Assembly: GCA_965112735.1 (NCBI GenBank)
Contig: OZ218951.1
Coordinates: 248,001-312,000 of the forward strand
Origin: Phaeosaccion multiseriatum
Lineage: Eukaryota; Protista; Ochrophyta, other classes
Direction of reading: 5' to 3'
Length of the DNA stretch: 64,000 bases
Below, piece by piece: positions 7,080 through 30,696 of the stretch (positions are counted from its first letter, which is position 1; every line of letters begins with the position of its first letter). The position numbers were made by a program, and so were the translations under genes. The notes below the pieces were generated by a model. It was not told where the DNA came from. It worked only from the letters and a program-made list of their open reading frames with translations, and searched no databases.

Positions 7080-7120
<41 letters not shown>

Positions 7121-7156: not shown

Positions 7157-7312
7157 CACATGGCTTGGTAGCGACCGACACGGTAGTTTAGTTATTATAT
7201 ATTACACCCTTAAGCCACACAAAGTCACATCATCACACAATACAGTTTTCTAAAATTGCTACAGTTACGGGGGCTGACAAACTAAAACTAAAACTACCAA
7301 CGCCCCCTTTTA

Positions 7313-7743
7313 CTTTTTTTACTGTGATTGCTGTGATTTCGCGGTTGAATGGCACTTTTGACGCCCAATTATTACGCCCCATTAATTTTTTTTTACGCCA
7401 AATGACGATTTTTTTTGACGACGTTTGACGACGTTTGACGACGCTTTAGCCCCCTATTTGACGCCCTTTGACGCCTTTTGACGCCTTTTGACGCTCTTTG
7501 ACGCCCTTTGACGCCCTTTTCCGTGATTTTTTTTTACGTGATTTTTTTTAGACGAAATTAAGGCGAATTAAGATAAAAGGGCGTCAAAGTGCGTCAAAGG
7601 GCGTCAAAGGGCGTCAAATAGGGGGCTAAAGCGTCGTCAAACGTCGTCAAACGTCGTCAAAAAAATCGTCATATGGCGTTAAAAAAAAATTAATGGGGCG
7701 TAATTGGGCGTCAAAAGTGCCACTCAACCGCGAAATCACAGTA
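7313..7743. mobile_element. AT-rich foldback/MITE-like element built of TTTGACG(C/A) subrepeats
   Basis: Arm ~7313-7520 is the reverse complement of ~7575-7743, e.g. CTGTGATTTCGCGGTTGAATGGCACTTTTGACGCCCAATTA vs TAATTGGGCGTCAAAAGTGCCACTCAACCGCGAAATCACAG. Confidence 0.8.
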
Positions 7744-8321
7744 ACACTCGATTTGCGTAAGAATCGCCCAAATTTCGACCAAAACGGTTTTAGCGCATTT
7801 GCAGGAAAATGACGCTGGGAGGAGCGCTATAGCTCTTCGTGTAGCTCTTTGAGATCCCCACCGATCCATGGTCTTTCGGCTTTCATCGCCTCTTCCCTTC
7901 CGTAGTTGTCAGCATTTCCGCAGCAGCACCCCCTTCCCGGGGGGGGAGAAGGGGGATGTGCACGCCACGGAAATCGCTCATGGGCAGCTTGCTTGCCCGC
8001 CCTTCTGCAAGAGAACAGGCGCAGCGCTACGGCGGCTAGCCACAGTGGAGCAGCAGCAGGACCCTTGGCAAGCCTGGTGCGATTTCCGTGGCGTGCACAT
8101 CCCCCGTCCCCCCCCCGGGAAGGGGGTGCTGCTGCGGAAATGCTGACAACTACGGAAGGGAAGAGGCGATCAAAGCCGAAAGACCATGGATCGGTGGGGA
8201 TCTCAAAGAGCTACACGAAGAGCTATAGCGCTCCTCCCAGCGTCATTCTCCTGCAAATGCGCAAAAACCGTTTTGGGCCGGAAATCCGGCGATTTGGGCG
8301 ATTCTTACGCAAATCGAGTGT
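7744..8321. mobile_element. Non-autonomous TIR element (MITE) with ~235-bp inverted arms and TA target-site duplication (Tc1/mariner-like)
   Basis: Starts ACACTCGATTTGCGTAAGAATCGCCCAAAT and ends ATTTGGGCGATTCTTACGCAAATCGAGTGT. TA at 7742-7743 and 8322-8323; ~100-bp central spacer. Confidence 0.85.
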
Positions 8322-8370
8322 TAAAAAATTAAAAAAAAAAAATCATAATAAAAACCTCAAGATGCCACCA

Positions 8371-8718
8371 GGCCTCTCGCTGCGTGCTCCACACGCTGCC
8401 TGCATCAGGTAAGCCGCATCCCCTTGTCCTCTCTGGCTCCTCCTTTGCCACGACTCTTCGGCCTCCCTCCTCCCTTCCTCCTCCCTCCTCCCTCCTCCCT
8501 GTCCTTCCCCTCCGCTCCTCCTCCCCTCTCCTCCCCCTCCCCCTAGGCCATCCCGTCCGTGAGCAACAGCGTCACTAGCACCTGCACCACCGGGCTTGCA
8601 GTGATGTCAAGACCCGGGCACTCCATCTTGTCGAACAACAATTGGTCCACGCGCTCACGGAGCTCGTTCACAAGCACGGAGATGCGCGCCATGGCGGAGA
8701 AGCAGATCCACCCATCGA
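8371..8718 (-). pseudogene. Duplicated fragment of the DEAH helicase last exon and 3' flank (copy of 36311-36631)
   Basis: Encodes [58 protein letters not shown] count 3 mismatches in the 176-bp coding part versus 36456-36631. It lacks the exon's splice acceptor. Confidence 0.9.
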
Positions 8719-8798
8719 CAATGGGTCCGGGACCAGTCAGCCAAGTATACATCACCGCCCTAGACTATTCTTCAATCGCCCGTATCGTACTAGAGGGA

Positions 8799-11700
8799 TC
8801 AAACTACATCGAATCTATCTACATTCTTGGTCTCTTCAGGCTGATGCACACTCTTCCGCCGGAAAGGCGCTCCTCCTCGGCGAGGGCTGCTTCTCTCTCG
8901 AAGCACATGTCTCCTCGACTCTCCCCTGCCTTTGTTGCAAAGGGTTCGCTCTTCTGCCGGGGTTCCGCCGCTGTCCAGCTCCGTTCCGTGACGCGGCGCA
9001 GTGAGCGCTCGGGAGGACAAGACGTGCTTTCTCAGCGGTATGCCCACCCACGCCACGTCTCCACGCTTTGAATTGGTGACACTTTCACCTCTCATGGCCA
9101 TACTCAGGTCACCAACGTTAGCTCCTGCTTCAACGCGGCATCCAGGCTGCAAGTGAGCCCTTGCTCCGAGCCACGCGTTCTCCTCGACTTGCACAGTCTT
9201 GAAGACGAACCCTCCCGTGCCTTCGATGGTGTGCGCGAAGATTGTGGAGTCTTGCAACACCACCGCTTCGTCTCCAATGACGAGAAGATGCGCATCATAA
9301 GGCCTGAGCCATAAAGATGTGTCCTTGCCAACACTTGCCCCCAGCAGCCGCAGCCACGCCGCGTACACCGGCCCGCCCGCGAAGTACTTGATGCAGAGAG
9401 CCTCAATGAAGGCAGGGGCCATGCTGCCCAAGCGGTATATATCCAACGAAGGCGAATCGAGCGCTATAGGAGGCTGCCCCTCTTTGGCATGCAAGGATGT
9501 GCCCAGAACTCGATGGAAAAGAATGGCTGAGCAAGCGCCCGCCAAGGCCATGAGAACTTGAAAGACGAAGCTCCCCAACACAAGGAAGAACACTCCAGTA
9601 TGGCTCTCGCCCAGTGTATCCCTCGCCACCACTTCTGGAAGGACGAAGGGACAGAAGACGGCAGCCCCATGCACATGGCCATTGCGCAACAGCAGGTCAG
9701 ATACCGACGCGCTGATCAACACCCCCGGACACCAAACGCCGAGGAGCAGCACCACAGTCGCAAGCCCGCCGAGCGCATTGTGCATCCTCGACGGAACAGG
9801 AAGACTGCCTGCTGCATCGACGCCATCCTTCTCAGCAGCAGCACTCATTGGGTTCGGCAATACAAACGGCCTAGGGGCGCCCACTACAGAAGAGTTGCAC
9901 GGTACGTCGTCGTCTCTACTCACAACGGTGCGATCTGCGACCGTGCTTCCGTCCCCAATGCAAGCTCCGCCTAGGAGAAGAGCTTCGTTCGCAACAATGT
10001 TGAAGCGGCCGATTGTGATGCTTTGCGTATCCTCCTCTCCACGACCACCCCCATCAGCGAAAAGGTGCACAGAGCCCGCGAGCTGGGAGTTTTCCCCTAT
10101 CCTGAGCTTCTCCCATATCGTAGTGATAGGAAGGGTAAGAAGTGCGCACCCCCGCTCCAGCCTGGCGCCCATGGCGGAAGCAAAAACACGGTTGAGCCCA
10201 CATTGTGCCACAAAAAGGGAGCCAACTTTGAAGAGAGGACTCTCCTGAAGAACTCCGAGTGACAGCCGTGTGGTGGCGCTTGGGCCCAGCAGCAAGAACA
10301 CACGCTGTAGCGATAGCACTGCCACCATGTACAGCATGCTTCCGATCAGCAGCAGCACGGGGAATGCCAATGCACGAGCGAAGATGGAGACACTCTCCCC
10401 CGCGCCGTCGTCATCACCCCCACCGGCAAGCACAAGTATCCAGAGGGGCAGCAGGTACGACCCCAAGTTGGTCACTGAAAGCAGGGCCAAGGCACAAAGC
10501 TCTTTTCCTATCCGCCGCAGCCCCTGCTCGCGTTCGACCTCTGCCAGCGGGCCAGAGAGTGACGAATGGCCGAGCGACGCGTACGGACCGAGCTCCATCC
10601 CCTCGTCGATGACCAAGTCCTTTGGCTCCTTCTTCAGGCCCTCCCCCCCCTCCTGCGTCTGCCCCCCCTCCCATGGAGACGGACACACGTTGGACAGTAT
10701 GCACACCTTTGCTCCCTTCCCGATCCTCACGCGATGGACATGGAGCATGCCATTTCGAGTAATGACAGACGGGCGAATGACGGCTCCGTACTCGATCACT
10801 GCCCCTTCTCCAATCTCGATCAAGTCATGCTCGTGCAGCAGCCAGCTCTCTAAGCGCGCGCTTCCACTGATTCGTGCCCCCAGCAGGCGGTTCCACACCC
10901 GCAAGGCGAAGGTACCACGGAGAACAGAAATCAGCAGTGCGGCAAGTTTCAGCACATTCTGTACAGCATACCACCGCCAGTAGTACGAGCTCCTCACGGA
11001 CCATCGCCCCGGTCGCATGCGGCCAAGCACAGTCCACTTCACCACTACAATCAGGGCAAGGAACCAGCTTACTGACACGACGACGAGGGGTGGTAGCCAA
11101 GAAAGAATCGTCGTGTTGCCGCGCCCTGCTCTACGTAGCAAGTACACGCCAACGAAGCTGGGAGAAAACCCGCAGCTGAGCACAGCAACAACGAGCAGCC
11201 AACTCAGAACCTGCAGCACCACTTGCTTGCCAGTGCTGAGCCTCCGGTGCGCTTTCATCGCTTCCCCTTCTCCACCGACTGACTCGAAATCGCGCTCCTC
11301 GTCCTTCACTCGGGCTTCGCTTGCTGCCGACGACTCTTGCCCGCTGTCTCCTCGACCTCCGCCCTCCTCCGCGGCACCAAGCACTGAAAGTGCCACAGCG
11401 GTTCGGTTCTGGAAGATCTGCATTACTGTCAGAGCCTGCAGGAGTCACACAGACACAACAGGGTCAGCAACAAGGGCGAGACACAACACGGACGAAAGCT
11501 TTGTGCTCAAAGTCACTCACCTCGAAGCCGGGAACCTCTGCCCGAATACGCGAAACCGCCTGAGCTGCACTCAACGATGTGCCTCCCTCTGCGAACAAGT
11601 CGTCATTGGCCTGCAAGTGAGGCTGCTCCGTGGCCTGCCTCAGGATGCCCAGCACTTGGCGGGCAGTGTCGCCTAACGCCTCGTCACCATCGGACCACTT

Positions 11701-14700
11701 CACAGCGGTTTTGTTTCCCTTCGCTTCCGCCTTGATCATCCTCAGCACCTCTTTCACGTCTCTCTTTCCACTGCTCGTCATCGGTAGAGCATCCACGGCC
11801 ACAGCCGTGCTCGGCACCATGTATGACGGTAGCAGCCTGCTCACTCCTTGCAGCACCATCTCAACTTCGGCACTAGAAGGTGTCAGAGCCGCCACAACCG
11901 TCTCGCGCTCTCTGTCCACCGCTGCCACGGCGCTCCCCACCCCCTCTTGATGGAGCAGCGCAGCCTCCACCTCGCCCAGCTCAATACGATAGCCGCGCAC
12001 CTTGACTTGAGAGTCTCGGCGACCCCTAAACACCAGCGATCCGTCTGCCAGCTGCCGCACCAAGTCACCCTGTCAGAACGTGTTAAGTTTGAGATGCGTC
12101 AGATCAGAACAGTGCAGTAGGGAGCAGAGAAACCTACCTCCACCCTCACCCCCGTCTCTGCTTGTCACTGCATGGCATACCAAAGGCAAGTCAAATGTAC
12201 ACACAAACGCACACACACAAAGCCGCACACCCATGGGCAACCTTTTCGACTTACCGTACGATACACCCTGCGCTGGTCCGCCAAGAAGGGCGCGGGGATG
12301 AAGGCCTTCGACGTGAGCTCTGGGCGATTCAAGTACCCACGCGCCAGCTGTCTCCCCCCAATGCAAAGCTCGCCCTCCACGCCCTGAGGCACCAGCTGCA
12401 GACGCTTGTCCACCACATACACTTGCACGCCGGCTCGAGGCTTGCCGATGACGAACCCACTCGACATGGCACCCGGACTGTACTCATGTGCGGTCGCGAA
12501 AACCGTCGCCTCTGTTGGGCCGTAGCTATTGACAAGGCGAACACTGCGCCTCCACATGTCCACTTGGCCTTCCTTGATCGGCTCCCCAGCCAATGAGATG
12601 GACCGTAAGGTGGCCTCCTTAGCACCATTGGTGATGTCTTGCGGTCGAAGCAGCGACAGCAGTGACGGGGTGCAGTACATGTCTGTTACCCTCAAAGACC
12701 GTATCACCTCCGGCAGGTCGTTCAGCATGGAGCCCTTCGCTGCCAGGCACAGCGTCGCCCCACACGACAACGGCCCAAACAGCGACGCCACAGACACATC
12801 AAATGTCAAAGCAGCACTCAGGAGCACACGAGAAGATGCCGTTATCGTCAGTTCCTCTTCGTAGAGAGTCGCCATGAAGCTGGCCGTGCTTCTGTGCTCA
12901 ATCATCACGCCCTTTGGCCGGCCGGTACTACCGGACGTGTGAATCACGTACGCCATGTTCTCGCCCACGGCGTGGCACACAGGCTCCGCTGTACTCTCCG
13001 CTTGCATCACAGCCACCACGTCCACACAGCTCGCGTCTCCGACACGCCGCGCTAAGCTGGCATCGGCGGTTGCCAGCACCTCAGACTCGCCTACTGCCTT
13101 TGCCGTCGTCAGAACGACGCTCAGCCCGGCGTCTTGTGCGATCATCGACAGCCTATCGTCGGGATGCTCGGGATCCAGGGGCACGTACGCCGCCCCCGCT
13201 TTGAGCACGCCCAGCACTGCCACAACCGCCTCCACGCAGTCCCCAGCAATCAGCACCCCCACCAGGCACTCCGGCCCCACGCCTCTCCCCTGCAGCATGC
13301 ATGCCACCGTATTCGCATGCCCATTCAGCTCCCCGTAGCTCATCACTCGATCTGTCTCATACTCGTGCAGGGCTTCCTGCTCCGGACTGCGAGAGGCCAT
13401 CTCTTCGAAAGCCGCGTGCAGGAGGGGCGGTGGTGGCGATGCTTCCTCTGCACCTCCCTCCTCGTCTCCATTGCCATCCCCCGCCACCAGTGCAGCGCCG
13501 CTCAACGTCTCCACCACCTTCACACGGTCCTCGTGTGCCAAGAGACTCAGCTTCCACACGCTCTCGCCCGGCCTGCCCACTGCACTCTCCAGCAGCGCCA
13601 GGAAGCTCCGCGCCAGGGTCTCCACTGTGGCCTGGTCGAGCACCGCCGTATTGTAGCACAGGCTGCCGTGCATGTCCGACGCACTGTCCGTGCTGCGCAC
13701 AAGGTATAGTTCGATGTCAGTCGTATTATTCTTCCAAGTATCCAAACCCGCCTCCTGTAGTACAAAGAAGGCCTGCAGCGCCTTGCCACCATCATCTCTG
13801 CCGAGCTGGGCCCGCTCAACCACCTTGTGGAACGGTGCCTCGGCATGCTTCATGGCACCCAGATACGCGACCTGTACGCGAAGCAGCACCTCCCGAAAGC
13901 TGGGGCTTCCTCCCAGACCCAGACGGAACGCGAGGATGTTGACGAAGCATCCCAGCACGCCCTCCAAGCCTTGCGCCACGTCTCTTCCGAAGTGCGCAGT
14001 GCCCACCACCACATCCTCCGCTCCGCACACACGAGCCAGCAGCACTTGGAACGCGCCCATGAGCCCCACAAACAGCGTGGCGGAGCTACCCGCGCACAGC
14101 TTACTCAACTTGACCAGCACTGCATTGGGTAGCACCAAGTCCACCTTCCCACTTCCTCCCACACTGATATCTTCATGCACCATTTCTCCACTGAGGCCCT
14201 TTTGGGCATGTCGCTGATGGAGAGGCAGCTGCAGTGGACTGGTACCAGCCAGTTGACCCTGCCAGTATTCAAGCAGCTCCTCAATACGGCCTTCGCCGTC
14301 CAGCCGAGCTCGTTGCCACCTGGAGTAGTCCGCGAAGCTGAAGGGCAGAGCCGGTAGGTCTTGTGCAAAGCCTTGCCCGGCCATGAAAGCCGCGCACACC
14401 GCCTTGAACTCGCCCTGGAAGAGCAAGTAGCTTGCACCATCAAAGATGCAATGATGGAACGTAGATACTGCGGTATAGTGCTCCTCCTCTCCGCTCTGCT
14501 TCGGGACGTGCACGACCAGCGTGCGCCATAGTGGCTGTCTCTGCTCCAAATCGAATGTACGAGCATAATCGGCCTCCATCAGGCTCCGAGCCGCACCAGC
14601 ACTGCTCGCCACGGCTGAAGAGAGAGCAGCAGACACCACCTCGGCCGCCGTAATTCCAAGCTGAACCTGTCTCAGAGAGCCCTGCTTTGTCCACTCAAGC

Positions 14701-17700
14701 GCCGTCCGGAGCACGTCATGTCGCTCCACTATGCTGCCTAACACTTGTGCTATCATGTCCACAATTTCAGCGGATGTTCGTCCGGAGATCAGCGAGAGGG
14801 GCAGCGGCAGCACCGCTGGGAGATTGTACGCGCTCTGCCCGCCAGGGGCAGTCGTCCGCAGTGCTACGTCCGAAAGGTACATGTGCTCCTGCTGGTAAGC
14901 GGCGGGGGCGTCTGTGTCCGAAGAGGACTGCCAGAGGGCCATGGAGCTGCCATTTGCCCCGGCCCCCGTTGTTTGATCGTCTTGCTCATTCAGCGGCCCC
15001 GAGTCGGCTCCCAGCACTTCCTCTTCGACCCACACTGCCAGCGCTGACACCGTTGGATACGAGAAGAGCACATCAGTAGTCACCACAACCCCGAAGCGAG
15101 CCTGTAGCTGGCCGCGCAGCTCCACTGTTGACAAAGAGTCAAGACCTGCTTCCATCAAAGGAGTGTTCTCATCCAGCTCTTCGGCACCCTCCCCAAGGAG
15201 GTCCTTGGCCATATCAAGCACCGCCAATCGCACTGATTGCTGTCTCTCACCAGGGGGCAGTCTCAAGAGCGCCTCGCGCACTTCATTGTTGAGTTTGGTG
15301 TTGCTGGATGCGCCTGCTGCTGTTGAGACAAGCCCTGACAGCAGGGGCGATCTACTGGACACCCCCAAGCTGCCTGCAAACTTGCCCCAGTCCATGCCAG
15401 GCAGGACAGCCACATCACCCACGGACGCTGACGACATCGCAGCGGCATCTAAGGCAGCCATGCCCAGCTCAGCTGACACCGTGCCCACACCCGCGAGCTC
15501 CAACTGCTTTTGAACGATATCGAGCTGGGCGGCCATACCAACGTCAGCCCATGGCCCCCACTGCAATGACGCCCCTGCAAGCCCGAGGTGTCGCCTGTGC
15601 CGCATCAGCCCGTCCACAGCCGCATTCGCCGCAGCGTAGTTTGCCTGTCCAGCGTTGCCCAGTACTCCGGCCATGGATGTGAAGCAAAAGAAAAAGTCAA
15701 GGCCGGGAGAGCGCCCCTCCTCCTTCGCCCAAGCCAGCGAGAGCTCGTGTAAGTTCACCGCCCCCTGCACCTTGGGTCGGAAGACGTTCATCACGCTCTC
15801 CGCCGTCTGCTCTTGCAGCGGCTTATCATCCAGCACCCCGGCAGCATGCACCACACCGCGTACAGGGGGGAGCAGAGGCAGGACGCCCCCCAGGCAAGTC
15901 CGAAGTGCCTCAGCATCAGCAACGTCACAAGTAGGAGTATGGATCAGCTCCACCTTGTTCCGAAGCTGCTGCCACTGTTCCGTCATGCTCTCGGCGATCT
16001 TCCCACTCCTCGACAGCAGCACCAGGTGACGAGCGCCCCTCGACGCGAGGTGCTGGGCCGTCACGAGGCCGAGAGCTCCCAGACCGCCGCTGATGACGTA
16101 CGTGCCATCGGACACCACTGGCACACCATACGAGGGGTTGGTCAGCACCACCTTGCCGATGTGCTTCGCTTGGCTCATGTATACCATGGCCTTCTGAGTA
16201 TCCTCCCTCATGTCAAAGGGTATCGTCGGTAGGGGCTTCACATTGCCTGACATGCAGTCTTCAGCAAGACGCTGCAGCCCACCACTGATCCAGCCCGGCT
16301 GAGCTACGAAGTCAGACTCAATCATGCTATCCAGTGCCAGTAGCTCGTACCTCACATCGGATCGGGCGGTGCGCATCTGCTCGTGACTCCACACGCCTCG
16401 CTTGCCAATCTCGACGAATATACCGCCCTCACTCAGCATGTCCAATGAGAAGGGAATGTAGTCTTCACTCAGACAGTTGAGCACCACGTCCACCTTCACC
16501 TCACCCATGGACTGCTTGAACGCCTCTGCGTCTCGCGATGACGCAATGTGCTCCACTCCCAAGCTCCGGAGGAAGTCATGCTTCACAGCAGCGCCGGCAG
16601 TGGCGTACACCTCTGCGCCGACCCGCTGAGCATACTGTACGGCAGCAAGGCCCACACCGCCAGACGCGGCGTGAATAAGAACCTTCTCTCCAGCCTTGAG
16701 GCCCTCAAGGGCCTTTATCACGGTGAGGAACACGGTGGGAAGTGCAGCGGCCTGCTCGAAGCTCAGCACGGCCGGCATCACGGCCAGACACGCGTCCTCC
16801 GTCACCAGATGGCTGCGCAAACATCCTCCGTCCGCGAAGCCATATACATTATCACCGACACGGAAGCGCGAGCTGCCTCCTGTTCTGATCACCTCCCCGG
16901 CGAACTCGGAACAAGGGTCTCCAGGGTCGCCAGGATACATGTCCAGCACATTCAGCACGTCCCAGAAGTTGAGCCCCACGGCCCTCACCGCCACCTCTAC
17001 GGAGCTGCCAGCTGCTGGGTCGAGGGACGGATGCTTACCAACGCTCGTATCGTCACGCAGGGCGAAAGCGCTCACAATGCTGCCTCTTGCCTTCAAGTCA
17101 AGCGCGAAGGGTAGCTGCAGGGGTTGATGTACAAGCTGAGGTGTCCAGCATTGCCCATCGCGTACCCACACATCTTCTGTGGAGGCAGGGAAGGCCAAGC
17201 CCAAGGCAACCTCGCTGTCTTCGACCTTCTTGTCGCTCAGGTCCACCACACCGATCTGCATGGAGGGGTGCTCCATCCTCGCAGTCCGCACCAGCCCAGT
17301 CACCCAGCTGTGACACCAGTCCTCGCCGCTTTGGACGCCTCTCGTCAAAACCGTCAGCGGCACACTCGACGCAGTGGACAGGCTCCTGAGTAGAGCCATC
17401 AGAGCGTAGGCCGCTCGAGCAAGCTGGCCCTCTTCTGCGTCTCCTTCGCCATCCCTGGGGATCAGCACGTACAAGATTCGAGTCCACTCGTCCTCTTCAA
17501 GAAGAGCACCGTCGTCCCAAGAGCCGCCCACCCGTCCGTATCGAGGGTGCACGTCCACGCCCTCCGGAACAGAGCGTCGCACTGCCGCAATGATCTCAGG
17601 CTCACTCTCCCTCTGGTCCTGTGCACTAATCACGAGCCACTTCTGCTGCACCGCCTCACTATCATGATGAGGTCGCTGTGGAGGTACGGCTGACTCCGTG

Positions 17701-20700
17701 GGCTTCCACTCCAGCGTGTACATCGCTCGACGAAGCGGATTGGAGCGAGCGAAGCCTCTCGCTCGCTGAGCGCGGAATGCACGCATCTCCACCAGAACCT
17801 GCTTACTCTCGAAATCGGCAATCTTGATGTCAAACTTGATGCTGTTGCCCCCGGGTTCCACTTCAGCGAGCGTCGTGTGCACCCACACCTTTGCTCCTGT
17901 GATGACACTGAGGACGACAGTCTCGTCGAAACCAACGGGCAAGAATGGAGCTCCGCCTCTTTCTTCCAGCAGCTGGTGTGGGATTGCGTGTAGGATGGAG
18001 TGAGTCGCATTGTCGAGCACAGCAGGGTGCAGAGCAAAGTCCGTCGCCTCCCAAGGCTCGCAGAGCTCCGAGTCGAGAGCACGCACGACCGATAGCACCT
18101 CTCCGTCATTGGCGAACATCTGTAAATTCCGCTCAAAGCGAGGACCATAGTTGAAGTTGGCATCCGCCATTGCCTTGTACAGGCCACGGGCCAAGTCCAC
18201 CGTCCCTACGCGCTCTTTGATTCCCTCTACATCGAGCGTGTCACGCGGCTCGGCTCGATCTGTGATGGACACATAGTCCATCCTCGCGGTTATTCCCTTG
18301 TCGCCCGTGGCACCTCCGAAAAACTGCATGCTTCCATCTCTCGCGTACAAAGCACTCAAGCCGTCACAGACAATAGTACTGCGACTCTGCGCTTCGTCCG
18401 TGTTGATGTCCAGGAAACCCTCAATCTCCAAGGGAGCCACAAAGTTGGCTCCCTGTAGGAGTACTTGCTGCTCCACCCCGAGCTGTCTTCCTCCTAGAGC
18501 AGCGACGACGCCCACTTCAATGTACGTCACCCCCGGAATGATCACCACATTGTTGACGGCATGGTCCTTGAGAAGGCCCTTGAGGTGAGGAGAGAAGGGG
18601 CTGGCGAGCCGCATTCTGTCTCCCTCTTGGGACAGCTCGCCACTCGGCAAGAATGCCCGTGGAAGCCTGAACCAGCGAAACGCTCGGCGTGTGGGGTACA
18701 AAGCGTCACGTTCTGACTCTTTGTCCTTGTCAAGATCATGACTGACGCTGACGCCCTCTCCGTCAACACGCGTGGCAGTACTCTCAGCTCTGGGACCGGA
18801 TAGCACGGCGTGAGCATTGGTTCCACCGGAGCCAAAAGAGCTCACGGCAGCAACGAGTGCTCCTGTGTAGCCGCCTCGACCCACTGGCACCATGGTCGCA
18901 GGCAAAGTCACAGGGACGCCGGCGAGCTCCAGCTCGGGGTTGCTGTCCTTCAAATGCAGGTTCGGAGGGGCGACGCGGTGCTGCAGCACCAGTACGGTCT
19001 TGATGAGGCCTGCAACACCTGCGGCGCCCTCCAGGTGTCCGATGTTGGTCTTCACCGCACCTACCACCAACGCGTTTCCCGCGCCGCGCTCCAATCCACA
19101 GTACACGGCCTTGACGGCGCTCATCTCGATGGGGTCTCCCAGCGCCGTTCCCGTGCCGTGCGCCTCCACGAAGCCCACCTCTGCGGGGTCTCTTCCCGCC
19201 TCTGCCAGCGCGGCAGACAGGAGCTGCTGCTGAGCAAGAGGACTGGGTGCCGTCAGACGAGCGCTGGCCCCATTGTGGTTGACCGCACAGCCCTCGATCA
19301 CCGCTAGCACAGTGTCCCCGCTGGCCATAGCATCATCAAAACGCTTCAGCACAATGGCACCACATCCTTCGCCTCTGACATAGCCATTGGCCGCTGCGTC
19401 AAACGTTTTGCAGCGCCTGCGACAAGGCCAAGAAAGATAGGAGAGGGGAAGGGAGTGGGGCATGGCAGGGAAGTTCTTGTTGGGTCAGTAGAGAAGACGC
19501 CCAAGAATGAACTGCAAGAGCGGCAATTGGGTAAATATATAATAGCACTCAGACCAGAGCGGCGGGTGCAACTTACCAGTCGGGGGAGAGGAATGTCCCC
19601 GCAAACAATGACTGAAAGGTGCTCTTCCCGAGCAGCAGGTTCACGCCACCGACCACCGCAGAGTCGCACTTGCCCAGGCGGAGGTTGCTGCAAGCAGCGT
19701 CCAGAGCCACCAGGGACGACGAGCATGCTGTCTGCAGCAACGCACTGGGGCCGCAGAGACCCAGCGTGTAGGACACGCGATTAGCAATGTTCGAAGCCGT
19801 CAGGCCCATTCCGCCGTAGGCGCTCTGAGCAGCGGCATCTCCTGCCACGAAGCCCCAGTCCGTGTCCGACAAGCCCACGAATACGCCGGTGTTGCTGCCC
19901 CGCAGGCTGCTCTTGCTGTGGCCCGCGCGATGGAGGGCCTCGAAGGCCACCTCCAGCATGAGGCGCTGATTGGGGTCCATTGCCTCTGCCTCCGCAGCAC
20001 TGATGCCAAAGAAGGCATTGTCGAACATCTCCACGCCCTCAATGAACCCTCCCTGCAGCTCCGGCTCGCCCGCCTTGCTGTCCCATCTGTCGCGTGGTGC
20101 TGCTGTGATGCAGTCTCTGCCCTTGCACAGCAACGACCAGAACTGCTCCGGGCTGTTGGCTCCGCCGGGGAAGCGACACGCCATACTCACTACAGCGATG
20201 GGGGCTCGAGAGTCTAAGGACGAGGGCCGATTTGCCGGAAGCACCCGCTCACGCTCAGCATCACCCGGCGCCTCAAGAATCTGGGCCTCGAGCCACACGG
20301 CCATTGCAGACACCGATGGATACGAGAAGAAGGCACCGTTCGAAACGGTGACACCACACCAGGCCTTGATTCGATTGCGAAACTCCACGGACGCCATCGA
20401 ATCGAGCCCGGCTTCCATCAAGGGCATCCCTGCTGCCAAGGTGAAATCCTCGCCAACACACTCGACTGCCATACCCGTCAGGACTTGCTCGATCCTCTCC
20501 CGCCGTGCTGACTCCGGCAAGTGCAGGAGCTCCTCCCGCACCTCGGCATTGACGCTGTAGCCCTTTGCCGCCTCACCACTTTCTCCGCGGTCCGTCAACT
20601 GCCGGAGGAAAGCGCTGTGCACAGGGTCCAAGCTCGCTCGAAATCTGCCCCACCTCATGGCCGGCATGACAGCCACTTCCTGCACGTTGGTATGCGTCTG

Positions 20701-23700
20701 GCTTGCAAGGACGGCATCCAGAGCCTTCATACCTAGCGCCGATGAGATCAGGCCCACTCCGGCCATCTCCGCAGCTTTCGACACCATCTCAAGCCGCACC
20801 GCCATACCCACGTCGCCCCATGGGCCCCACTGAACGTTGGAAGCAGGAAGGCCAAGCTGGTGTCGGCGATACCGCATCAGCCCGTCCAACGCAGCGTTTG
20901 CCCCGGCATAGGCGCTCTGATTGGACAAGCCAAGCAAAGCGGAGGTCGATGAGTACGATGCGAAGAAGTCGATCTCCTCCCTGCCGCTCGCCGCCCACTC
21001 AAGGCACAACGCGTGGAGATTCCAACCTCCCTTGACCTTGGCGGCAAAGACATTTCGCACGTTCTCTTCCGTCTCGCCCGACAACATTCTCTTTGCGCCA
21101 TTCACCCCCGCTGCGTGAACCACACCCCGAACATGAGGCAGGCCCACTAAAGCGCTGGCTACAGCATCTCGAAGCTGGCTCATGTCGGACACATCGCAGG
21201 TCACGGCCACAGCGGTGACACTCTCCATGCTCTGCAGGGCCTGCCACAGCTCTGAAACTTCTTCCGCCGCCCGGCCGCTTCGAGACAGGAGGAGCAAGTG
21301 TCGAGCGCCCTGGGAGACCAAGTGATTCGCCGTCACCAGCCCCAGCCCCCCCAGACCACCGCTGATCAGGTAGGTCCCATCCTCCCTGCACGTGAAGCGA
21401 TCGACTCCTTCCGATGTCAGATGGAGTGTGCTGGGCACCAGCCTCGGAGCGAGGATCTCACACTCTCGAACCAGCAGGTCCACGCCTCGGCCGCCGTCGC
21501 GGGCTCCTGCAGCCAGCGTCACAGCCTGGGAGATAGCTTGGGCTTCCATCTTCTCTACTCTAGGTCGAGCATCCTCAGACTGTGGATACATGGCATACTC
21601 AAGGTCGATGTGGTTCACATCGAGGTCGCCCCGCTCCAGGCGTACGCTTCTCACCAGTCCTACGGTCCAGCTGTCCTGCCAACCAGCACCGCTGTACACA
21701 CCCGTTGTCACCACCATGATGGGCATCACTGCCGCGTCCCCGTCTAAGCTCTGTACAGTTTGCACAAAGTGGATTGCCCCATCGGTAGCAGAGCCCGTCG
21801 CTGACGTCAAGTAGAAGAGATGGGCCCCATGGAGCTGCGCGTCTGAACCGACCGCCTCCATCACGTGCACCTCTACACCACTTGCTGTCGCCGCGCTTCG
21901 GACAGCTTCCAAGGATCTGTGGTTGCTCGATGCGTGCTGCCCTTCGGCTGCCTGGGGAATCACGACGAGCCACGGAAGGCGGCCGGTCAGCGAAGCCTGC
22001 TGCGAAGCCGTGGGCACCTCCACCGCCTCCCACTCAACAACATAGAGCGGGCCCTGCTCAGCTTCACTCCGCGGCTGAGGTGCTGCCGTGGCTCGCGCTG
22101 TGTACCAAGGAAAGGCTTTGCGCGTTGGGAACAGGATATGCTCCTTGCCCTTACTCTCTGACTGCTGTACTGTGCTCAGACCTGCTCCAAACGACTCCTC
22201 GGAGCTCTTCCCGCGCGTGAGAGAAGATATCCACACCAGGCCCTCGCGACGCTCGCACTTGGCTCCCATACTGCTCAGCACAGGGTTGGGGCCCACCTCA
22301 ACGATGCTCAGGTCAGCCCCCCTCCCGTCTCCCATCCAGTGCTCCACCAGCGTGTGGATGCCTTCTGCGAACAGCACTGGCGACAGCATGTGTTGCACCC
22401 AATACTTCGCCTGCGTCACCTCCTCCGCTCTCACCACCTCACCCGTCACGTTGGACACCAGGGGTATGCGTGGGGCGCTGAATGACACCTGCCTCAGAAC
22501 CTCCTCCAGCGCACGTACAGCGGGCTCCATGAGAGGAGAGTGGAAGGCGTGCGACACCTCCAGGGCCTTGCAGCCCACCCCATCCGCCGTGAGCTTCTCC
22601 ACCACCTTGTCCACAGCGCTGCGAGCTCCAGAGATCACGCTCGCGCTCGGTCCATTCGACGACGCCAGCACCACCGCGTCTGCCCCCCCTGCAGCGTCGA
22701 TGCTTGCCAAAGTCGCCTCCTTGCCTGCCCTCACTGCGAACATCACTCCTTTGCCCTCGGGGCAGGTCTGCATGGCGGCTCCTCTCTTGGCGGACAGCAT
22801 CAGCCCGTCCTCCAGCGACATGACGCCGGCCACGCACGCCGCCACCACCTCGCCCAGGCTGTGGCCCATCACCATCGAGGGCTCCACGCCCTCCGACTTC
22901 CACAGCTCACACAGGGCGTACTCCAGCACAAACAGGCACGGCTGGCAGTAGCGCGTCTCCTTCAGCAGCGCTTGTGCAGTCTCCTCCTCCTCCTCTCCCT
23001 CCCCGTCCTCAGCAGCGGCAGGGTACATGAGCTCCACCACAGACTTGTCCAGCCAAGCTCGCTCCATGAGCAGCGTACTGCACCGCTGCACGCACTCGCG
23101 GAACACGCCCTCCTTCTCGTACAGCTCTCTGCCCATGCCCACGTACTGCGAGCCCTGTCCAGTGAACAAGAACGTCACCGATGAACGCTTCTTGCTTTGC
23201 TGTCCATCCAGCTGCGGCAAGACCTCACCCCTCTCAACCAACGTTGGTCCTAAGCTGCTGAGCACCACATGGGCGTTGGTGCCTCCAAATCCGAAGGAGC
23301 TCACCCCGACCAGCACAGATCCATCGGAGTTGGTGGGTAAAGGGGTCATGGAAGATGGGAACAGGACTGCAATTCCCTCCATGTCGAGCTCTGGGTTTTG
23401 CTCGATGAAGTGGAGATTGGGTGGAGCGGTCTTGTGCTGCGCCACCAGGACGGCTTTGATGAGTCCGGCAATCCCTGCCGCTCCCTCCAAGTGCCCGATG
23501 TTTGTCTTGAGCGCCCCTACGATCAAAGGCTTCGCTTCATCGCGGTCGTGGGCGAACACTCCTCTGAGAGCGCTCATCTCGATGGGGTCGCCGAGAGACG
23601 TGCCCGTGCCGTGAGCCTCGACGAAACTGACGTCGTTTGGAGATAGCCCGGCGTCGATCAAGGCGTCTGTGATGAGCTGCTTTTGAGCACCAGGGTTTGG

Positions 23701-26700
23701 AGCCGTCATCCGCGCGGTGGGCCCATTATGGTTCACAGCCGAGCCTCGCAGGACAGCCAGCACCTCATCGTCGTTGGCAAGGGCGTCGTCTAGGCGCTTC
23801 ACCACGATTGCTCCGCACCCCTCGCCTCTGACGTAGCCGTTGGCGGCCTTGTCAAATGTTTTACAGTGCCTTGAGAGTGAGGACGGAAGGGGGAAATAGG
23901 GAAGATTTAGCTAAGAAGGCGGGAGGAGAAAGGGGCGATTTAAGGGGCGATTTAAGGTTCTCAGGTTCTCACTCTACCTCCCTGAACGAAACAGTGGTGC
24001 ATGACCAGGTGCCTACCGACTACCTTATCGGGCCTTCACCTGCAGAGCATCATACTCACTAACTTCCTCCCTCCCCTCCCTCCCTCCCTCTCCTCCCTCC
24101 CGCCCCTCCCTCCCTCCCTCCCTCTCCTCCTTCCTTCCTCCCTGCCCCGCCCCCCTCTCTCCTCCTCCCTCACGCACACTCAAGCACTCACCCGTCTGGC
24201 GAGAGAAACCCTCCTGAGGAAAGGAGCTTGAAGGGCGCCTCGCTGAGAAGCAGGTTCACTCCACCGACCACAGCTGTGTCACACTTGCCCAATCGAAGGC
24301 TGCTGCAGGCGTTGTCCAGGGCGACCAAGGAAGAGGAGCACGCCGTGTCTACTGTTGAGCTCGGCCCCTTCAACCCCAGCGCGTAGGAAACTCGGTTGGC
24401 CAAATTCGACATGGAGGCTCCTGACGCCGCGTACACGCCCTCGCTCGCCTCGCCAGCTCCTTGGCTTGCTTTGGCCTGCAGCCAATCGCTTCCAGCGCAG
24501 CCGATGAAGACCCCTGTCTCGCTCTTACGGAGACTGCTCTTGTCACAGCCTGCCCTGTGCAGCGCCTCGAAGGCCACCTCCAGCAGCACGCGCTGGTTGG
24601 GGTCCATGCTTTCCGCTTCCGCTGACGAAATGCCGAAGAAGGTGTTGTCGAAGAGGTGGACGCCCTCTATGAAGCCTCCTCGCCACTCCTTCGAGCCGCC
24701 TCCCCACCTGTCTGCTGGAGCTGTAGAGATGCAGTCCGATCCCGTGCAAAGCATGCTCCAGAAACCTTGGGGCGAAGTCACTCCTCCTGGAAAGCGGCAC
24801 GCCATGCCCACCACCGCCAGCGGAGCTCGCATGCCTTGAGGCGAAGCCGAGGTGGGGCGCAAACCTCGCATTGGGTCTGTGGTAGCCCTTCCCATTACCT
24901 CGCCATCAAGCCAGCCCACAAGCTCCGCCACGCTGGGATACTCAAACAGCACATCGGCGGTGGCTGTAACCCCCAAGTCAGTTTGAAGGCGATTCCGCAC
25001 CTCCACGAGTGCCATCGAATCCAGGCCTGCCTCCATCAAGGGCACATTGTCGTCCAGCGGGGGCATGTCTGCATCAACGCACTTCAGCACGGTCGCCTTG
25101 AGCGCTTCCAGGAGAGCAACGCGTCGATCCTCTGGGGAGAGAGCAGAGAGAGTCTCGCGCAGCTGTGCGAGGGCGTCTCCAGCTGGGGGAGGAGCAGACG
25201 CAGCACCCTCGTAATCATGTGCTGGTGTTGCCCTCTTCGGGAGGGGAAACTCTCGCGACGAGGGGAATCCCTGCCAAGGGGTGCCCACTCTCTCTGCTGC
25301 GCCTTTGGGCCTCATGCCGCCATAGCTGCCCAAGATGACGTGGGCGTTGAAGCCGCCAACGCCGTAGGAATTCACCCCTGCGAGCAGCGTCGAGCCGTCG
25401 GAGCAGTAGGAGGAGAGAGGCGTCCTTCGGGTGGGCAGCGTGACGGGCACGCCCTCCAGCTTCAGGTTGGGGTTGACCTCCTTCAGGTGTAGGTTGGCTG
25501 GGGCCTCTCGCTGTTGTACTACCAAGATGGCCTTGATGAGCTGAGCCATCCCTGACGCCCCTTCCATGTGGCCTAGAGTAGTCTTGACAGTGCCCACTAC
25601 AAGGGGGGAGGCATCAGGCCTGTTGGGGGTGAACGCTGCCTTGAGAGCGCCTAATGAGTATCACGCGACGTGCGTTCGTGCGTGCGTGCATGAGGGACGG
25701 AGAGAGAGAAGGAGGGAGAGAGGGAGGGAGGGAGGGAGGGAGGGAGGGAGGGAGAGTAGAAGGGAGGGAGGGAGGGAGGGAGGGAGGGAGGGAGGGAAGG
25801 AGGGAGGGAGGGAGGGAGGGAGGGAGGGAGGGAGGGAGGGAGGGAGGGAGGGAGGGAGGGAGGGAGGGAGGGAGGGAGGGAGGGAGGGAGGGAGGGAGGG
25901 AGAGAGGGAGAGGGAGGAAGGAAAGAATGGAAGGAGGGAGGAGGGAGGGAGGGAGGGACGAGGGGAGGGCACGAATAAGCGTTGTTTACTATGTCTCATC
26001 ACAGCATCATTTGTCTAGTTGAGACGTAAGAGAGACATCACAATGATGGTCCAACACGAATGCCCCTCTTTTAACCCCTTTGCCTCCTTCAACGTACCCA
26101 GCTCGATGGTGTCGCCCATGACCGTTCCCGTGGCGTGAGCCTCAACGTAGCCCACTTCTCTCCCCTCGCACCCTGCCTGCCGCAGGGCGCTCCTCGCCAA
26201 GCTCTCTTGGGCGGCTCCCTTGGGGGCGGACAGAGAAGTGCTGACGCCATTGTGGCTGACAGCCGCTGCCTTGATGACGGCAAGGATGTTGTCTCCGTCC
26301 TTGATGGCGTCCGGCAGGGACTTTAGCACGACGGCCCCGCTGCCCTCACTGCGCACGTAGCCGTCCCCGGCCGCGTCAAAGGATTTGCAGTACCTGGAGA
26401 ACGAGACGGGACACAGGAAGCAGAGTTGGGGGGGGGGATGGATCAGTGTCCAAGCAAGGGACCAGAGAGAAGAGAAAGGGCGCTTTGGAAGGAAGAAAAT
26501 AGATGCAGAGCTGCAGGAGCACACTCACCCTTCCTTCGACAGAAGCCCCGCACTGGCTAGGCCGCCAAAGCCTTGGTCATGGAGCAGCAGGTTGACCCCG
26601 CCAACGACGGCAGAGCTGCACTGCCTCAGTTTCAGACTGTTGCACGCGTTGCTGAGGGCCACTAGGGCCGACGAACATGCTGCGTCTACGCTTTCGCATG

Positions 26701-29700
26701 GACCTACGAGGCCGAGTGTGTGCGAAATGCGGCCAGCGAAACATGCTCGGCTTGCCCCTGCCAACGTGTAGGCGCTGAGAGAAACGCCATCCGCGCTCTC
26801 ACGCAGCAAAGCGGGCCAGTCACTCCCTGCAGCGCCCACAAACACGCCAACTCGGTGACCTTCAAGCCTGCGTCGGCCCTCGTAGCCGGCTCTGTGCAGA
26901 GCCTCGTACGCAACTTCGAGCATGATGCGCTGGTTGGGATCTTGGGCCTCCGCCTCGGCGGTGGACATGCCGAAGAATGCGTTGTCGAACGCTTCAACAC
27001 CGTCGATGAAGCCACCTGTCGCATGACGGGGAGAGGAGGAGCGTCCAAAATGGGGTGAGCGGGGCACAGAGACGGGCAAAGAAGCGCCCAGCAAGCTTCC
27101 ATGCCCTCTACGAGTAACATTTGCAAGCCTCGTGGACACAGGGTAGAAACGCACCTCTCACTCCTGTTCCCAAGTCTCGCTCAAGGGGTGCATCGGTGAC
27201 GCAGTCCTCCTCATTGCACAGCTTCGCCCAGAGCTCTTCCGGGCTGTTGCAGCCACCGGGGAACCGACAGGCCATCCCAATGACTGCAATGTCGCCGCTG
27301 CTACCGTCAGAAGAAGGGACCCCAGGAATGGAGCGAGGCAGTCCGTCAACGGAAGCGTCGTCCTCCTCCTCTTCTTCTCCAAACAGGACCGTCTCCAGGT
27401 GAGCTGCGAGTAGAGCTGGTGTCGGATAGTCAAAGAGGGCGTCGGCCCCAATCTCAGAATCCTTGTCGCTCCCGTCTTCAGTCTTCTCGCTGCCCAGAAA
27501 GTCCTCGAGCATCACCGCCAGCTCGGCCATCATCACCGAGGTCATGCCCGCCTCCATGAAGCGGTCGTCGGCGGTCAAATCTCCATTATGCGTGACCTCT
27601 ACGGCAAACTCGAGGAGCTTCTCCAAGATGATGGCCACCCTTGCCTCCCTACCGAGGCCCTCCATAGCACGCATGGCCAGACCGTCTTCTCCTCCTCCTC
27701 TCCCCTCCGGGACACCGCCTTCGACGAAGCAAGCCCTTTCCTCTGGAGCTGAGCACACGCTGGCAAGGTTCACAGGAGGAGAGTCCTGTCGGTGTGGGTT
27801 GGGGGAGAAATGGACACGACAAGTGGGGTGAGACTCGACGCAAAGCCCTCAGCAGACGATTCCCTCACACAACGGCACGGATGAAAAGGGCTGTGAAGGG
27901 CAAGTACCAAAGCACACAGATTGAAGGGGGCAAAGGATTAGAGAGATGGGCAAGAGGCCTCCACTCCCGCTCACTCGCACCTGTGACATCGCAGTGCGGT
28001 CCTCGATGAGCTCGTGCACCATGTGCAGCTCGCCAGCGTGAAGCGCCTGTCTCGTCGCCCGCCGTCGGATCTTGCCGCTCGTGGTCTTGGGGATGGTCCT
28101 CTGCTTGATGGCCACCACCTTCGCCGCTCTGAGACCCAAGGAGGACGACAAGGCGGCCTGAGCGGCCTCCACCACTGCCTGGGCCTCGCCCTCTCGCTCT
28201 TGGCGGATCTCGAACACCACCTCCAGCACACCGTCCCCTCCCGTCTCGTCGGAGGAGAAGGCCGCAATGCAGCCCTGCCGAACGGCGCTGGAGGCCTCTT
28301 GCACAGCGAACTCGATGTCCTGCGGGTAGTGGTTGACCCCATTGAAGATGATGAGGTCCTTGATGCGGCCGCAGATGTACAGCAAACCCTCCTCCACAAA
28401 GCCCACGTCGCCTGTCCGTAGGTACTGGCGAGGAGGCAAGCTGTCACTGCCCCCAGCCCCACCCTGGAGAGAGAGCTTCGCCTGGAACACCTCCTTCAAC
28501 AGCTCGGGCTTGCCCCAGTACCCGGCGGCGACAGAGGGAGAGGAGACCCAGACCTCTCCCGTGGCTCCTGCTTCGCCGACCTCGGCCATGGTGTCGGGAT
28601 TGACAATTCGAATGTCCATAAAGTCTGCCCTCTCGCTCGGGGAGCCGACGCTGGTGAGGTCGGGGCGAGAAGGCGATCGATCGAGGACAGTGGTCCAGGA
28701 GACTGGGGAAAGTGTGCAATGGGGTGGGGAAGGCGAGAGAACGAGCGAATTAGTCGTTGGACCGATTCCTACACTGAGAGAGAATGAAATGCACCACTGC
28801 CTGCTGTCCCTTCGCCTCCACCCGGCCCCCCTTCTGTGCAGACTTCTTACCTAGAACCACGTGCTCAGCGAGCCCGTACGCAGCCGAGAACCACCTTACA
28901 GTGCACAAGTCACAGAGAGGCACGTACAAGGGAGAGGTATGAGGTTAAAAACCACTCACCGGCCGAAAAAAGGGGGGAGCACGGAGGATGTCGTGACAGG
29001 TCTCTCGAGCTCAAGCGCAGTCATAGCTCCTGCCGCACACTCACTCACCCCTGCCGGAGGCCGAAAGGCAGGAAGGCCCCTTCGAACCTCTCCACCGTCT
29101 CCGCTCGGATTGGCTCGGCTCCCGACTGCAGTCTGACCACGTGGGACAGATCCAGCTTGGGCTCCTTGCGAGTGCCGCGCACCTTGGCCATGTAGCGGGC
29201 GCAGAGGGCGTAGGCGAAGTCGGGGGCGACAGACCACTCCACGCGGTGTCGAGAGATGAGCTCCAGCCAGAGCAGGGGCCGCTTGATGAAGCTCACGGGG
29301 GACATGTAGTGCATAGTCATGCCCGTCAGGAAGGGGGTGAGGAGGCCGAGTACGAGGCCCATGTCCTGAGAAGCAAGGAGAAAGTAAGCAGGGTAGTGAG
29401 TGGGGCGCGAGTGAGCAACAGCAAAAGGCAAGACGAGGCGAAATGGAGAGCAGAGGCAGGGGTGTCCGGCCGCACATCGTTTCTCCCCTTCCTCACGCTT
29501 GCTTGGCGCTTCGTTCCTGGCCGTCCGTTTCCACATTTCTCCTCCCTTCATCTGTCCTGCCTCTGCTTCCTCGCTCCCTCGCTCGCTCACCTTCCCCCCA
29601 CTATATACAAGTCAACTCACATGATACTGGGGCAACCACGAGAAGCCCGTGGTTGGCACATTATGGATCCGCTCACTTGGTGCAGCCCTCTGGGTACGAC

Positions 29701-30696
29701 CGCTGCTGCTCGCCTCAGGCTGGTCTGATGGGGAGTCTCCAGCCTTGTGCGAGGGCCACAAGCGGTACATCCCCGTGGCGGGGTGGCAGCCGATGAGATA
29801 CACATTGGCCATGAGCGCTCCGAAGGTTACCATGACGCCCTTGGGGTCACCGGTGGAACCGCTGGTGTACTGCAGAAACGCCAGGTCCTCTTTGGCCACG
29901 CTCAGCTCGTCAAAGCTCCTCCTCCCTGCGCCTGACGAGGAGGAGAAGAAGAAGCTCAGAAGCAAACCCCCATCCGTAGCCTTAAAGTCGAGGTCCGCAG
30001 GCCACAGCTTGCGCGAGTCAGAGAGTGGATTGGACCTGTCCACTCTGCGCACAGCTGCTATCGTGGAGTCGGTGAGGCACAGCACGGGCTTACAGTCCGC
30101 CACGATCTTGCTCATCTTGGGCAGTGACTTGGACAGGGGAGGAGCAGGCGGGTACACCATCACCGCCACCACGCCCGCTCTCAGGCAGCCCAGGAAGGCG
30201 GCGAAGAAATGCAGGCCCGGCCCGTAGCACAGCACCACCATGCTGCCCTTGGGCACGCCCCACTCCTCGCGCAGCATGTAGGCAATCTTGCCCGCCTGAG
30301 GAAGGGTTGGGAGAAGAACGTTTGCATCTTGGGTTAATTATCACAAAGTGTCTAGTAGGAGTACCGGGGGGGGTTAAGGTGCAAGACTACAGCACGCCAG
30401 CAGCAGCTGAATCGGCGTGAGAAAGCAAGCAAGGGCATCAACATCTCCACGGAACGTCTGACCTCCACGGAATGTTTGTTCGTTGCTTTGCTTACCTCAT
30501 CCCACATGCGTCTGAAGCTGTACCTCTCCGCCTCTTTGCCCTTGCCATCGTACCAGAAGGCAAAGGGCTTGTCGCCGAGGTCAGCAACAACCTCATGAGC
30601 CCTCCTCAGTAGAGGAGCGAGAGAAGAAGAGGCCGCGACTCCCTCGATTCCGCCTCGTTGTCTCCCTGGAGACGTCACGGTTTCTTGTTCCTCCAT
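8799..30696 (-). CDS. Hybrid FAAL-PKS-NRPS megasynthase with Pls-like membrane terminal domain (~6,490 aa, 13 exons)
   Basis: Exons 30496-30696, 29621-30295, 29049-29365, 28851-28894, 27981-28702, 27155-27785, 26529-27015, 26098-26393, 24192-25650, 19577-23869, 12255-19416, 11521-12069 and 8799-11435. All are GT-AG and phase-compatible; total 19,473 nt = 6,491 codons. Splicing restores the split motifs WLPQYH|DMGL, YRT|GDLVR and SPDG|HCKTFD. The start ATG is uncertain. Confidence 0.92.
9030..11230 (-). other. Pls-like terminal domain: paired TM segments alternating with three left-handed beta-helix acyltransferase-like repeats
   Basis: Three repeats start [17 protein letters not shown] and LLGASVGKD, each followed by hexapeptide I/V-x-I-G strings ([44 protein letters not shown]). 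Hydrophobic helices lie between them, plus the motif [20 protein letters not shown]. Confidence 0.8.
11390..14900 (-). other. NRPS module: C-A-PCP
   Basis: [11 protein letters not shown]; [84 protein letters not shown]; [17 protein letters not shown]. Confidence 0.92.
15020..20205 (-). other. PKS module 3: KS-DH-ER-KR-ACP (no AT)
   Basis: [25 protein letters not shown]; [16 protein letters not shown] and HPAVLD; [12 protein letters not shown]; [30 protein letters not shown]; [17 protein letters not shown]. Confidence 0.9.
20280..24825 (-). other. PKS module 2: KS-AT(malonyl-type)-KR-ACP
   Basis: [28 protein letters not shown]; [23 protein letters not shown]; [22 protein letters not shown]; [16 protein letters not shown]. 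Confidence 0.9.
24900..27295 (-). other. PKS module 1: KS-ACP (no AT, no reductive domains)
   Basis: [40 protein letters not shown]; a short linker leads directly to [20 protein letters not shown]. Confidence 0.88.
27981..30620 (-). other. Fatty acyl-AMP ligase (FAAL)-type loading domain; ACP1 follows at ~27390-27640
   Basis: [68 protein letters not shown]; ACP1 [14 protein letters not shown]. Confidence 0.88.

Follow-up and report, generated by a model that had tools for sequence, protein, structure and literature searches.

A Pls-like terminal domain at the end of a protist polyketide synthase–non-ribosomal peptide synthetase gene

Chain release determines the product of an assembly line, and it is the releasing end of such a line that concerns us here. 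The stretch analysed, 64,000 nucleotides from Phaeosaccion multiseriatum (GenBank assembly GCA_965112735.1, contig OZ218951.1, positions 248,001 to 312,000 of the forward strand), will be called the window, by which we mean the whole of it, and all coordinates are counted from its first letter. On its minus strand, the open frame at 8799..11435 reads as the last coding exon, and so the C-terminal part, of a single large, intron-containing gene for a polyketide synthase–non-ribosomal peptide synthetase (PKS–NRPS). Profile and predicted fold together show this exon to encode a divergent homologue of the terminal domain of Pls and PosA, the synthetases of epsilon-poly-L-lysine and delta-poly-L-ornithine, and on sequence grounds this domain is the sole candidate release catalyst in the gene.

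Scanned with Pfam, the exons yield the domain order FAAL-ACP-KS-ACP-KS-AT-KR-ACP-KS-DH-ER-KR-ACP-C-A-PCP-terminal domain (FAAL, fatty acyl-AMP ligase; ACP and PCP, acyl and peptidyl carrier proteins; KS, ketosynthase; AT, acyltransferase; KR, ketoreductase; DH, dehydratase; ER, enoylreductase; C, condensation; A, adenylation), and all the features of the gene lie, like the gene itself, on the minus strand. The upstream exons, taken as 19573..30337 (the 5' gene boundary is approximate), hold by Pfam the FAAL-type AMP-binding domain, ACP, KS1, ACP, KS2, AT, KR, ACP and the start of KS3. A large exon of 7.2 kb (12255..19463; Pfam and motifs) continues with the end of KS3, DH, ER, KR, ACP, C and the core of the A domain. 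It is followed by an intron of 185 nt (12070..12254), the removal of which rejoins the A-domain motif YRT|GDL; by an exon of 549 nt (11521..12069) in which the A domain is completed by its C-terminal subdomain and the PCP begins (Pfam AMP-binding_C and PP-binding); and by a second intron, of 85 nt (11436..11520), which interrupts the PCP. Both introns are GT..AG and in phase 0. The last exon then carries the end of the PCP, a linker, the Pls-type terminal domain, a low-complexity tail and the stop codon (8799-8801), the open frame (8799-11423/11435) comprising 878 codons. The active-site Cys is kept in all three KS domains, and module 2 has a KR and, by Pfam, no DH. Module 1 (24191-27848) consists of KS-ACP alone, lacking both AT and KR, and Pfam finds a single AT domain in the whole gene.

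Does the last exon really belong to the megasynthase? A search of public runs for this DNA turned up four, all from one study and none of RNA; their contigs are DNA-like, reading through the introns, and show no splice joints. Continuity of the exons is argued from the splitting of the PCP by an intron, from the canonical, in-phase splice sites and from relatives with the same fusion. The phosphopantetheine serine of the PCP (GGTSL, 11575-11577) is in the exon before the last one. When the products of the three exons were compared by tblastn with contig L001 of Chrysoparadoxa australica, colinear matches in a single reading frame were obtained, identity being 40.6% across the 2210 amino acids from DH to A, 39% in the PCP exon and 27% in the end domain, and the colinearity of the two loci extends beyond 2800 residues. 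In other protists, too, transcriptome proteins have a carrier protein fused directly to the same end domain. The window can be taken as eukaryotic because of its G+C content of about 60% combined with spliceosomal introns, and the colinear relative in Chrysoparadoxa is consistent with a stramenopile origin. As an aside on that relative, the model of CAM9397790.1 starts at 2077 of L001, and homology to the DH-ER of the window is in frame from base 178 (L001:178-2077); by this reading the model is short at its N-terminus and the gene is cut by the end of the contig.

The exon opens with the last PCP helix (its first 19 residues, 11379..11435, which align with the helix that ends the PCP of the Pls family). 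Kyte–Doolittle hydropathy then reveals six hydrophobic segments in three pairs, each coinciding with a long helix of the structural model described below. The first transmembrane (TM) pair consists of TM1 (residues 68-102 of the exon product, 11130..11234) and TM2 (residues 107-137, 11025..11117), the latter ending in the family-wide motif KW..GR..PG, of which K133 and W134 are conserved in the canonical members of the family and in the protist clade alike. The second consists of TM3 (residues 306-337, 10425..10520) and TM4 (residues 351-383, 10287..10385), and the third of TM5 (residues 550-584, 9684..9788) and TM6 (residues 610-645, 9501..9608); where the family has a Lys after TM6, the window has His. 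A soluble unit follows each pair, made of a helical part and a beta-helix. Unit C1 (10521..11024), supported by the profile TIGR02353 and by the strands of the model, has a low-complexity insert. C2 (9789..10286) contains the first of two matches to NCBIfam left-handed beta-helix (LbH) acetyltransferase models (residues 440-520 and 712-778), and C3 (9021..9500) a match to Pfam Hexapep (PF00132, E 2.2e-10, residues 744-771). The first-pass annotation, made from the letters alone, had described pairs of hydrophobic helices alternating with three hexapeptide-repeat units after the PCP, and hydropathy, model, Pfam and NCBIfam all bear this out.

The NCBIfam profile of the Pls/PosA terminal domain, TIGR02353, matches the exon product in three stretches (E 1.2e-38, 132.9 bits), the best of them at residues 70-257, with a score far below the 423.1 bits of its equivalog cut-off. 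Failure to match this profile, or a Pls-like structure, had been named at the outset as what would overturn the assignment; the profile does match, and the structural comparison was favourable too. An AlphaFold2 model (mean pLDDT 84.2, pTM 0.90), built on an alignment of 104 relatives (A2), has six long helices and three beta-helix blocks, with short helices ahead of each block, and the model of PosA as described in PMC10522769 agrees with this layout. A shape search of the ESM Atlas gave TM-scores of 0.80-0.83 over 670-714 aligned residues (rmsd 3.2-4.4), the matches being clusters of predicted structures that are named Pls/PosA or carry PP-binding together with Hexapep. Searches of the PDB by sequence, profile and Foldseek returned no Pls end domain, their matches being confined to single LbH acyltransferases and gamma-carbonic anhydrases; Foldseek probabilities were 0.99-1.0 against serine, maltose and LpxA acyltransferases, each unit taken alone resembling an LbH acyltransferase. 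On this reading, the three hairpins carry the three left-handed beta-helix units, which are packed as a pseudo-trimer on the cytosolic face.

When 1.84 billion representatives were searched exhaustively with HMMER, 1067 relatives came to light, and none of them was closer than 35% identity and 138 bits. Word searches with the end domain gave weak matches only (best E 2.5e-17), from which it follows that proteins of the organism itself are absent from the collections searched; those with the C-A region were dominated by bacterial NRPSs of several modules (31-35% identity). No second copy of the terminal domain turned up when the rest of the window was examined for one.

Trees of 105 end domains (FastTree) and of 44 (IQ-TREE) both set a group of 14-15, the window among them, apart from the large canonical remainder of the family (support 99-100; for the clade itself, 100 in FastTree and an SH-aLRT value of 99 in IQ-TREE). 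Besides the window, the smaller group takes in all those members whose upstream region is unusual, its named members coming from Chrysoparadoxa, Stygiella, Phalansterium, Diplonema, Gymnodinium and Biecheleria, together with one MMETSP transcript; within it, IQ-TREE places the window as sister to the Chrysoparadoxa protein plus a protein here called P0034 (support 86). This protist grouping is likely rather than proven, because of its long branches. Columns conserved in at least 85% of canonical members (E..ST and FxAD in C2, Q.HLFEDR in C3) are hydrophobic or small throughout the protist group, and what the two groups have in common are structural Gly, Pro, Lys-Trp and Arg residues, a Glu-x-Asp pair and the His of C3. 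Against TIGR02353, the scores of canonical ends are 687-764 bits and those of five protist ends 177-329, all five lying under the cut-off. The window goes with the protists in this respect: its C2 has neither E..ST nor FxAD by column comparison, and when the canonical motifs E..ST, FxAD, TEFD and QTHLFEDR were examined together, only the His was found to be kept. That residue, His735 (codon at 9231..9233), occupies a column that is near-invariant in alignments A1 and A2 (97% of the 104 relatives), and from the analogy with LbH acyltransferases we infer that it is the catalytic base.

From all this, the window gene seems to belong to an unnamed and unstudied protist clade in which Pls-like end domains are fused to PKS or NRPS modules. 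Various other fusions were met along the way. In the same clade, P0034 has two amine oxidases and two PCPs ahead of its end domain; P0055 and four members of its cluster have the arrangement cNMP-binding-A-PCP-end domain-FMN-dependent dehydrogenase; and P0134 is a C-A-PCP-end domain-acyltransferase (AT) protein. P0121 has the order amine oxidase-A-PCP-end domain-catalase, with a partial Pls-like end domain, and an ESM Atlas cluster labelled 'Catalase/hexapeptide' (56 members, all eukaryotic, mostly Streptophyta) aligns with residues 281-735 of the model at a TM-score of 0.50.

How is the finished chain set free? The first-pass annotation held that release appears to be delegated to the terminal domain, there being no GxSxG thioesterase or reductase. 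By Pfam, neither a thioesterase nor a reductase was found in the gene, its last exon included, or in ten further open reading frames (ORFs) of at least 70 amino acids (seven on the minus strand downstream of the stop codon, at 1141-8764, one on the plus strand and two upstream of the gene), which leaves the terminal domain as the only candidate, as that annotation had supposed. Its statement about the motif stands less well, as the exon does contain one literal GxSxG (GASVG, residues 699-703). We rejected the idea that GASVG marks a thioesterase, since the family does not conserve its Ser and no match to an alpha/beta-hydrolase was obtained. The motif sits in a family-conserved 'R..GA..G' turn before the third beta-helix, and is a chance match in that turn.

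Two observations on the surroundings may be recorded at this point. The plus-strand neighbour, an ORF at 4840-6183, has a DUF445 match and, of low complexity, a match to the Gp5_C repeat. Just downstream of the stop codon, at 7800-8320, contigs are 10-30 times as deep as over the gene, and many of them skip about 360-460 bases (from 7834-7923 to 8288-8297), with poly-C or poly-A filler; the region is probably either a dispersed repeat or a low-complexity insert that varies.

What the end domain is given to work on can be judged from the module before it. The code of the A domain, taken by hand from its motifs, with the same columns read in 105 relatives, is DVAYSASVF, which has no acidic residue for a diamino acid and no Glu at position 239. 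Such a Glu is present in 80 of 106 sequences (for example DAESIGTVV, DMEHNGTVT and DGESISVVN), and codes of this type are tied to Lys, Orn, beta-Lys and similar substrates, all the quoted codes carrying Glu239 (PMC10522769). The diamino-acid combination of Asp235 with Glu239 is thus not found in the window, and Glu239 is missing also from the proteins of Chrysoparadoxa (DAMMEGAVF) and Phalansterium (DVSDVAIVT). Bulky residues at 278 (Tyr) and 331 (Phe) suggest that the substrate is probably a small neutral amino acid. The conventional C domain reported by the first-pass annotation is indeed present and intact (HHCIFDG, 14436-14456, by motif reading), and because it precedes the A domain, the alpha-amine of the amino acid should be acylated by the polyketide chain. 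The donor module is therefore of another kind than a diamino-acid A domain, and the plain A-PCP-end architecture is replaced by one with a C domain and three PKS modules upstream. Since the score, the architecture, the substrate code and the motifs all depart from those of a Pls/PosA synthetase, the gene is not classed as one; by sequence, its end domain is a homologue, not an equivalog.

LpxA and LpxD are LbH enzymes with acyl-ACP donors and a His base, and the active site of an LbH acyltransferase is expected at the interfaces between units. By analogy, we incline, at a little better than even, to the view that the end domain frees an N-acyl-aminoacyl chain by transferring it to a free acceptor at the membrane. 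The polyketide part would make a partly reduced fatty chain, which the C domain would couple to the alpha-amine of the amino acid on the PCP. The PCP would then carry the N-acyl-aminoacyl thioester to the presumed active site, where beta-helices meet, and there His735 would activate a free amine or hydroxyl of a small molecule, of a lipid head group or of a wall component, and one intermolecular acyl transfer would free the chain at the membrane. With the canonical acidic residues gone, a polycation seems not to be the acceptor. Between the two roles originally offered for the domain, acylation of an acceptor and polymerisation of aminoacyl or lipo-aminoacyl units, transfer to an acceptor is the better fit. 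Homopolymerisation of aminoacyl units fits poorly because of the A-domain code, the C domain, the lost acidic motifs and the score below the cut-off, and a polylysine-like polyamide or other polycation is an unlikely product, since Glu239 is missing and an intact C domain would acylate the alpha-amine.

Some of the evidence weighs against this view. Acyl transfer to a free acceptor is argued by analogy, because the members of the protist clade are all uncharacterised in activity, product and acceptor; the unity of that clade could be partly an artefact of long branches; and the substrate of the A domain is a guess from a hand-read code. Moreover, the window is the most divergent member seen and has, at 133 bits, the lowest TIGR02353 score of the members tested. 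Four substitutions (R420S, K641H, D716H and G500A) are found in the window alone, at positions conserved in both clades. The family has Glu-x-Asp at 714-716 (98-100% of canonical members, 93% of the protist clade), where the window has Asp714-Ala-His716 (9288..9296, by column comparison), with Asp in place of Glu714 and a His716 that is the only one among 105 sequences. Altogether the window retains 53 of the 119 columns conserved across the family. The read variants listed for the last exon comprise 13 synonymous and 14 non-synonymous changes (pN/pS about 0.37), so that selection on the domain may have slackened and its function may have suffered. The end domain might accordingly be a catalytically damaged structure serving mainly as a membrane anchor, with water or a separate enzyme releasing the chain, and the low score, the unique substitutions, the many conserved columns lost and the near 1:1 ratio of synonymous to non-synonymous variants would all suit such a role. 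However, the 878-codon frame is intact, the AlphaFold2 model is confident, and His735 is kept along with most of the glycines and other structural positions; a pN/pS of this order still amounts to purifying selection, the non-synonymous variants lie mainly in loops and the tail, and the ten ORFs scanned nearby offered no other release domain. We therefore think impairment unlikely, and the variant pattern is compatible with a functional but fast-evolving domain. As to the variants themselves, public contigs differ from the window at many sites over 8799-12707, mostly as A>G and T>C; at some of these sites a single run shows two alleles, which suggests that the sample is heterozygous or mixed, or that another strain was sequenced.

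Might the domain instead polymerise, like its bacterial namesakes? It could be a Pls-like iterative polymerase that links N-(hydroxyacyl)-aminoacyl units head to tail, or an extender of a lipid-primed polyamide, yielding a lipo-depsipeptide or polyamide polymer. Its predicted overall fold equals that of the polymerising domain of Pls/PosA, His735 is retained, and the KR of module 2, having no DH beside it, would allow the chain to keep a free hydroxyl as acceptor; the growing chain in Pls is itself a free acceptor (PMC9205021), so that a donor with its own nucleophile could in principle polymerise. But an A-domain code with no acidic residue, an alpha-amine already acylated by the C domain, the missing acidic motifs and membership of a non-canonical clade with a score under the equivalog cut-off make this quite improbable. 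Hydrolysis, in which water is the acceptor and a free N-acyl amino acid enters or crosses the membrane, would account for the want of a nameable acceptor-binding motif and for the disappearance of the canonical acidic residues on the acceptor side, and N-acyl amino acids are plausible products of a PKS-fed C-A-PCP module. On the other hand, an elaborate six-helix membrane domain conserved across protists would then be hard to explain, and LbH enzymes are known as transferases, not hydrolases, so we regard it as a poor prospect. That the last exon is a separate gene or transcript, unfused to the PKS–NRPS, has in its favour an ATG near the start of the exon (11423) and is hardly credible: the exon opens with the last helix of a PCP whose serine is in the previous exon, the intron between them is canonical and in phase 0, and this fusion recurs both in Chrysoparadoxa, where a single frame runs through it, and in transcripts from further protists.

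A Pls-type end on a full eukaryotic PKS–NRPS, within a clade of such fusions spread across protists, points to an uncharacterised, membrane-coupled release of lipids or lipopeptides in algae and other protists, and if the acceptor is a lipid or a wall component, megasynthases would be tied directly to the chemistry of the membrane or cell surface. There is a small chance of a bolder outcome, namely a membrane polymerase or a wall- or lipid-grafting enzyme that joins lipo-amino acid units to each other via the hydroxyl of the chain, or attaches them to a membrane lipid or wall polymer. Were this true, the alga would make a new class of aliphatic depsipeptide material, and eukaryotic PKS–NRPS lines would have a third general ending besides thioesterase or reductase domains and terminal condensation domains. 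The PCP and the end domain with His735 form a defined unit on which the function of the whole clade can be tested. To our knowledge, work on the Pls/PosA end domain has been confined to synthetases of a single module that make polycationic antimicrobial polymers, and its structure has yet to be solved. A full-text search of the literature found no description of a PKS or PKS–NRPS fused to a Pls-type end domain. Published neighbours of the subject are homologues of the Pls/PosA type in Amoebozoa, Metazoa and Alveolata, from a survey limited to proteins of 1100-1800 residues (PMC10522769); a gene cluster of a bacterium in which A-PCP-Pls stands as a gene of its own (PMC13291983); and a gene family of Symbiodiniaceae annotated NRPS_term_dom, with function unassigned (2026 preprint).

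In comparing the window gene with known systems, it is convenient to begin with the usual thioesterase, terminal reductase and terminal condensation domains, which occupy the same place, directly after the last carrier protein, but have no relation in sequence or fold to its end domain, and none of them is present in the gene. LpxA, LpxD and the serine, maltose and galactoside acetyltransferases have the hexapeptide-repeat fold of each of its three units; these enzymes, however, are soluble homotrimers, whereas the window has three diverged units in one chain, with membrane hairpins between them and an assembly line fused in front. Among characterised systems, those that come closest are Pls of Streptomyces albulus and PosA of Acinetobacter baumannii (PMC10522769). 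In both, as in the window gene, the carrier protein leads into a single pseudo-threefold domain built from three pairs of TM helices and three beta-helix units; the predicted folds agree at a TM-score of about 0.8, and the near-invariant His of the third unit is shared. The window gene differs from them in being eukaryotic, with introns, and in having both a C domain and PKS modules, where Pls and PosA consist of A-PCP-end domain only; their A domains bind a diamino acid and have Glu239 in the code, which the A domain of the window does not have, and their ends score 687-764 bits and carry the acidic motifs of C2 and C3, the window scoring 133 bits and having none of these motifs. Close as well are the uncharacterised proteins of the same clade: Chrysoparadoxa australica CAM9397790.1 (DH..ER-KR-ACP-C-A-PCP-end), those of Phalansterium solitarium and Diplonema ambulator (C-A-PCP-end) and that of Stygiella incarcerata (PKS-ACP-end). 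Although their identity to the window is only 27-40%, and R420, K641 and D716 are changed in the window alone, these proteins and the window gene alike have the end domain fused to C-A or PKS modules, and all of them score under the cut-off that defines the Pls/PosA type.

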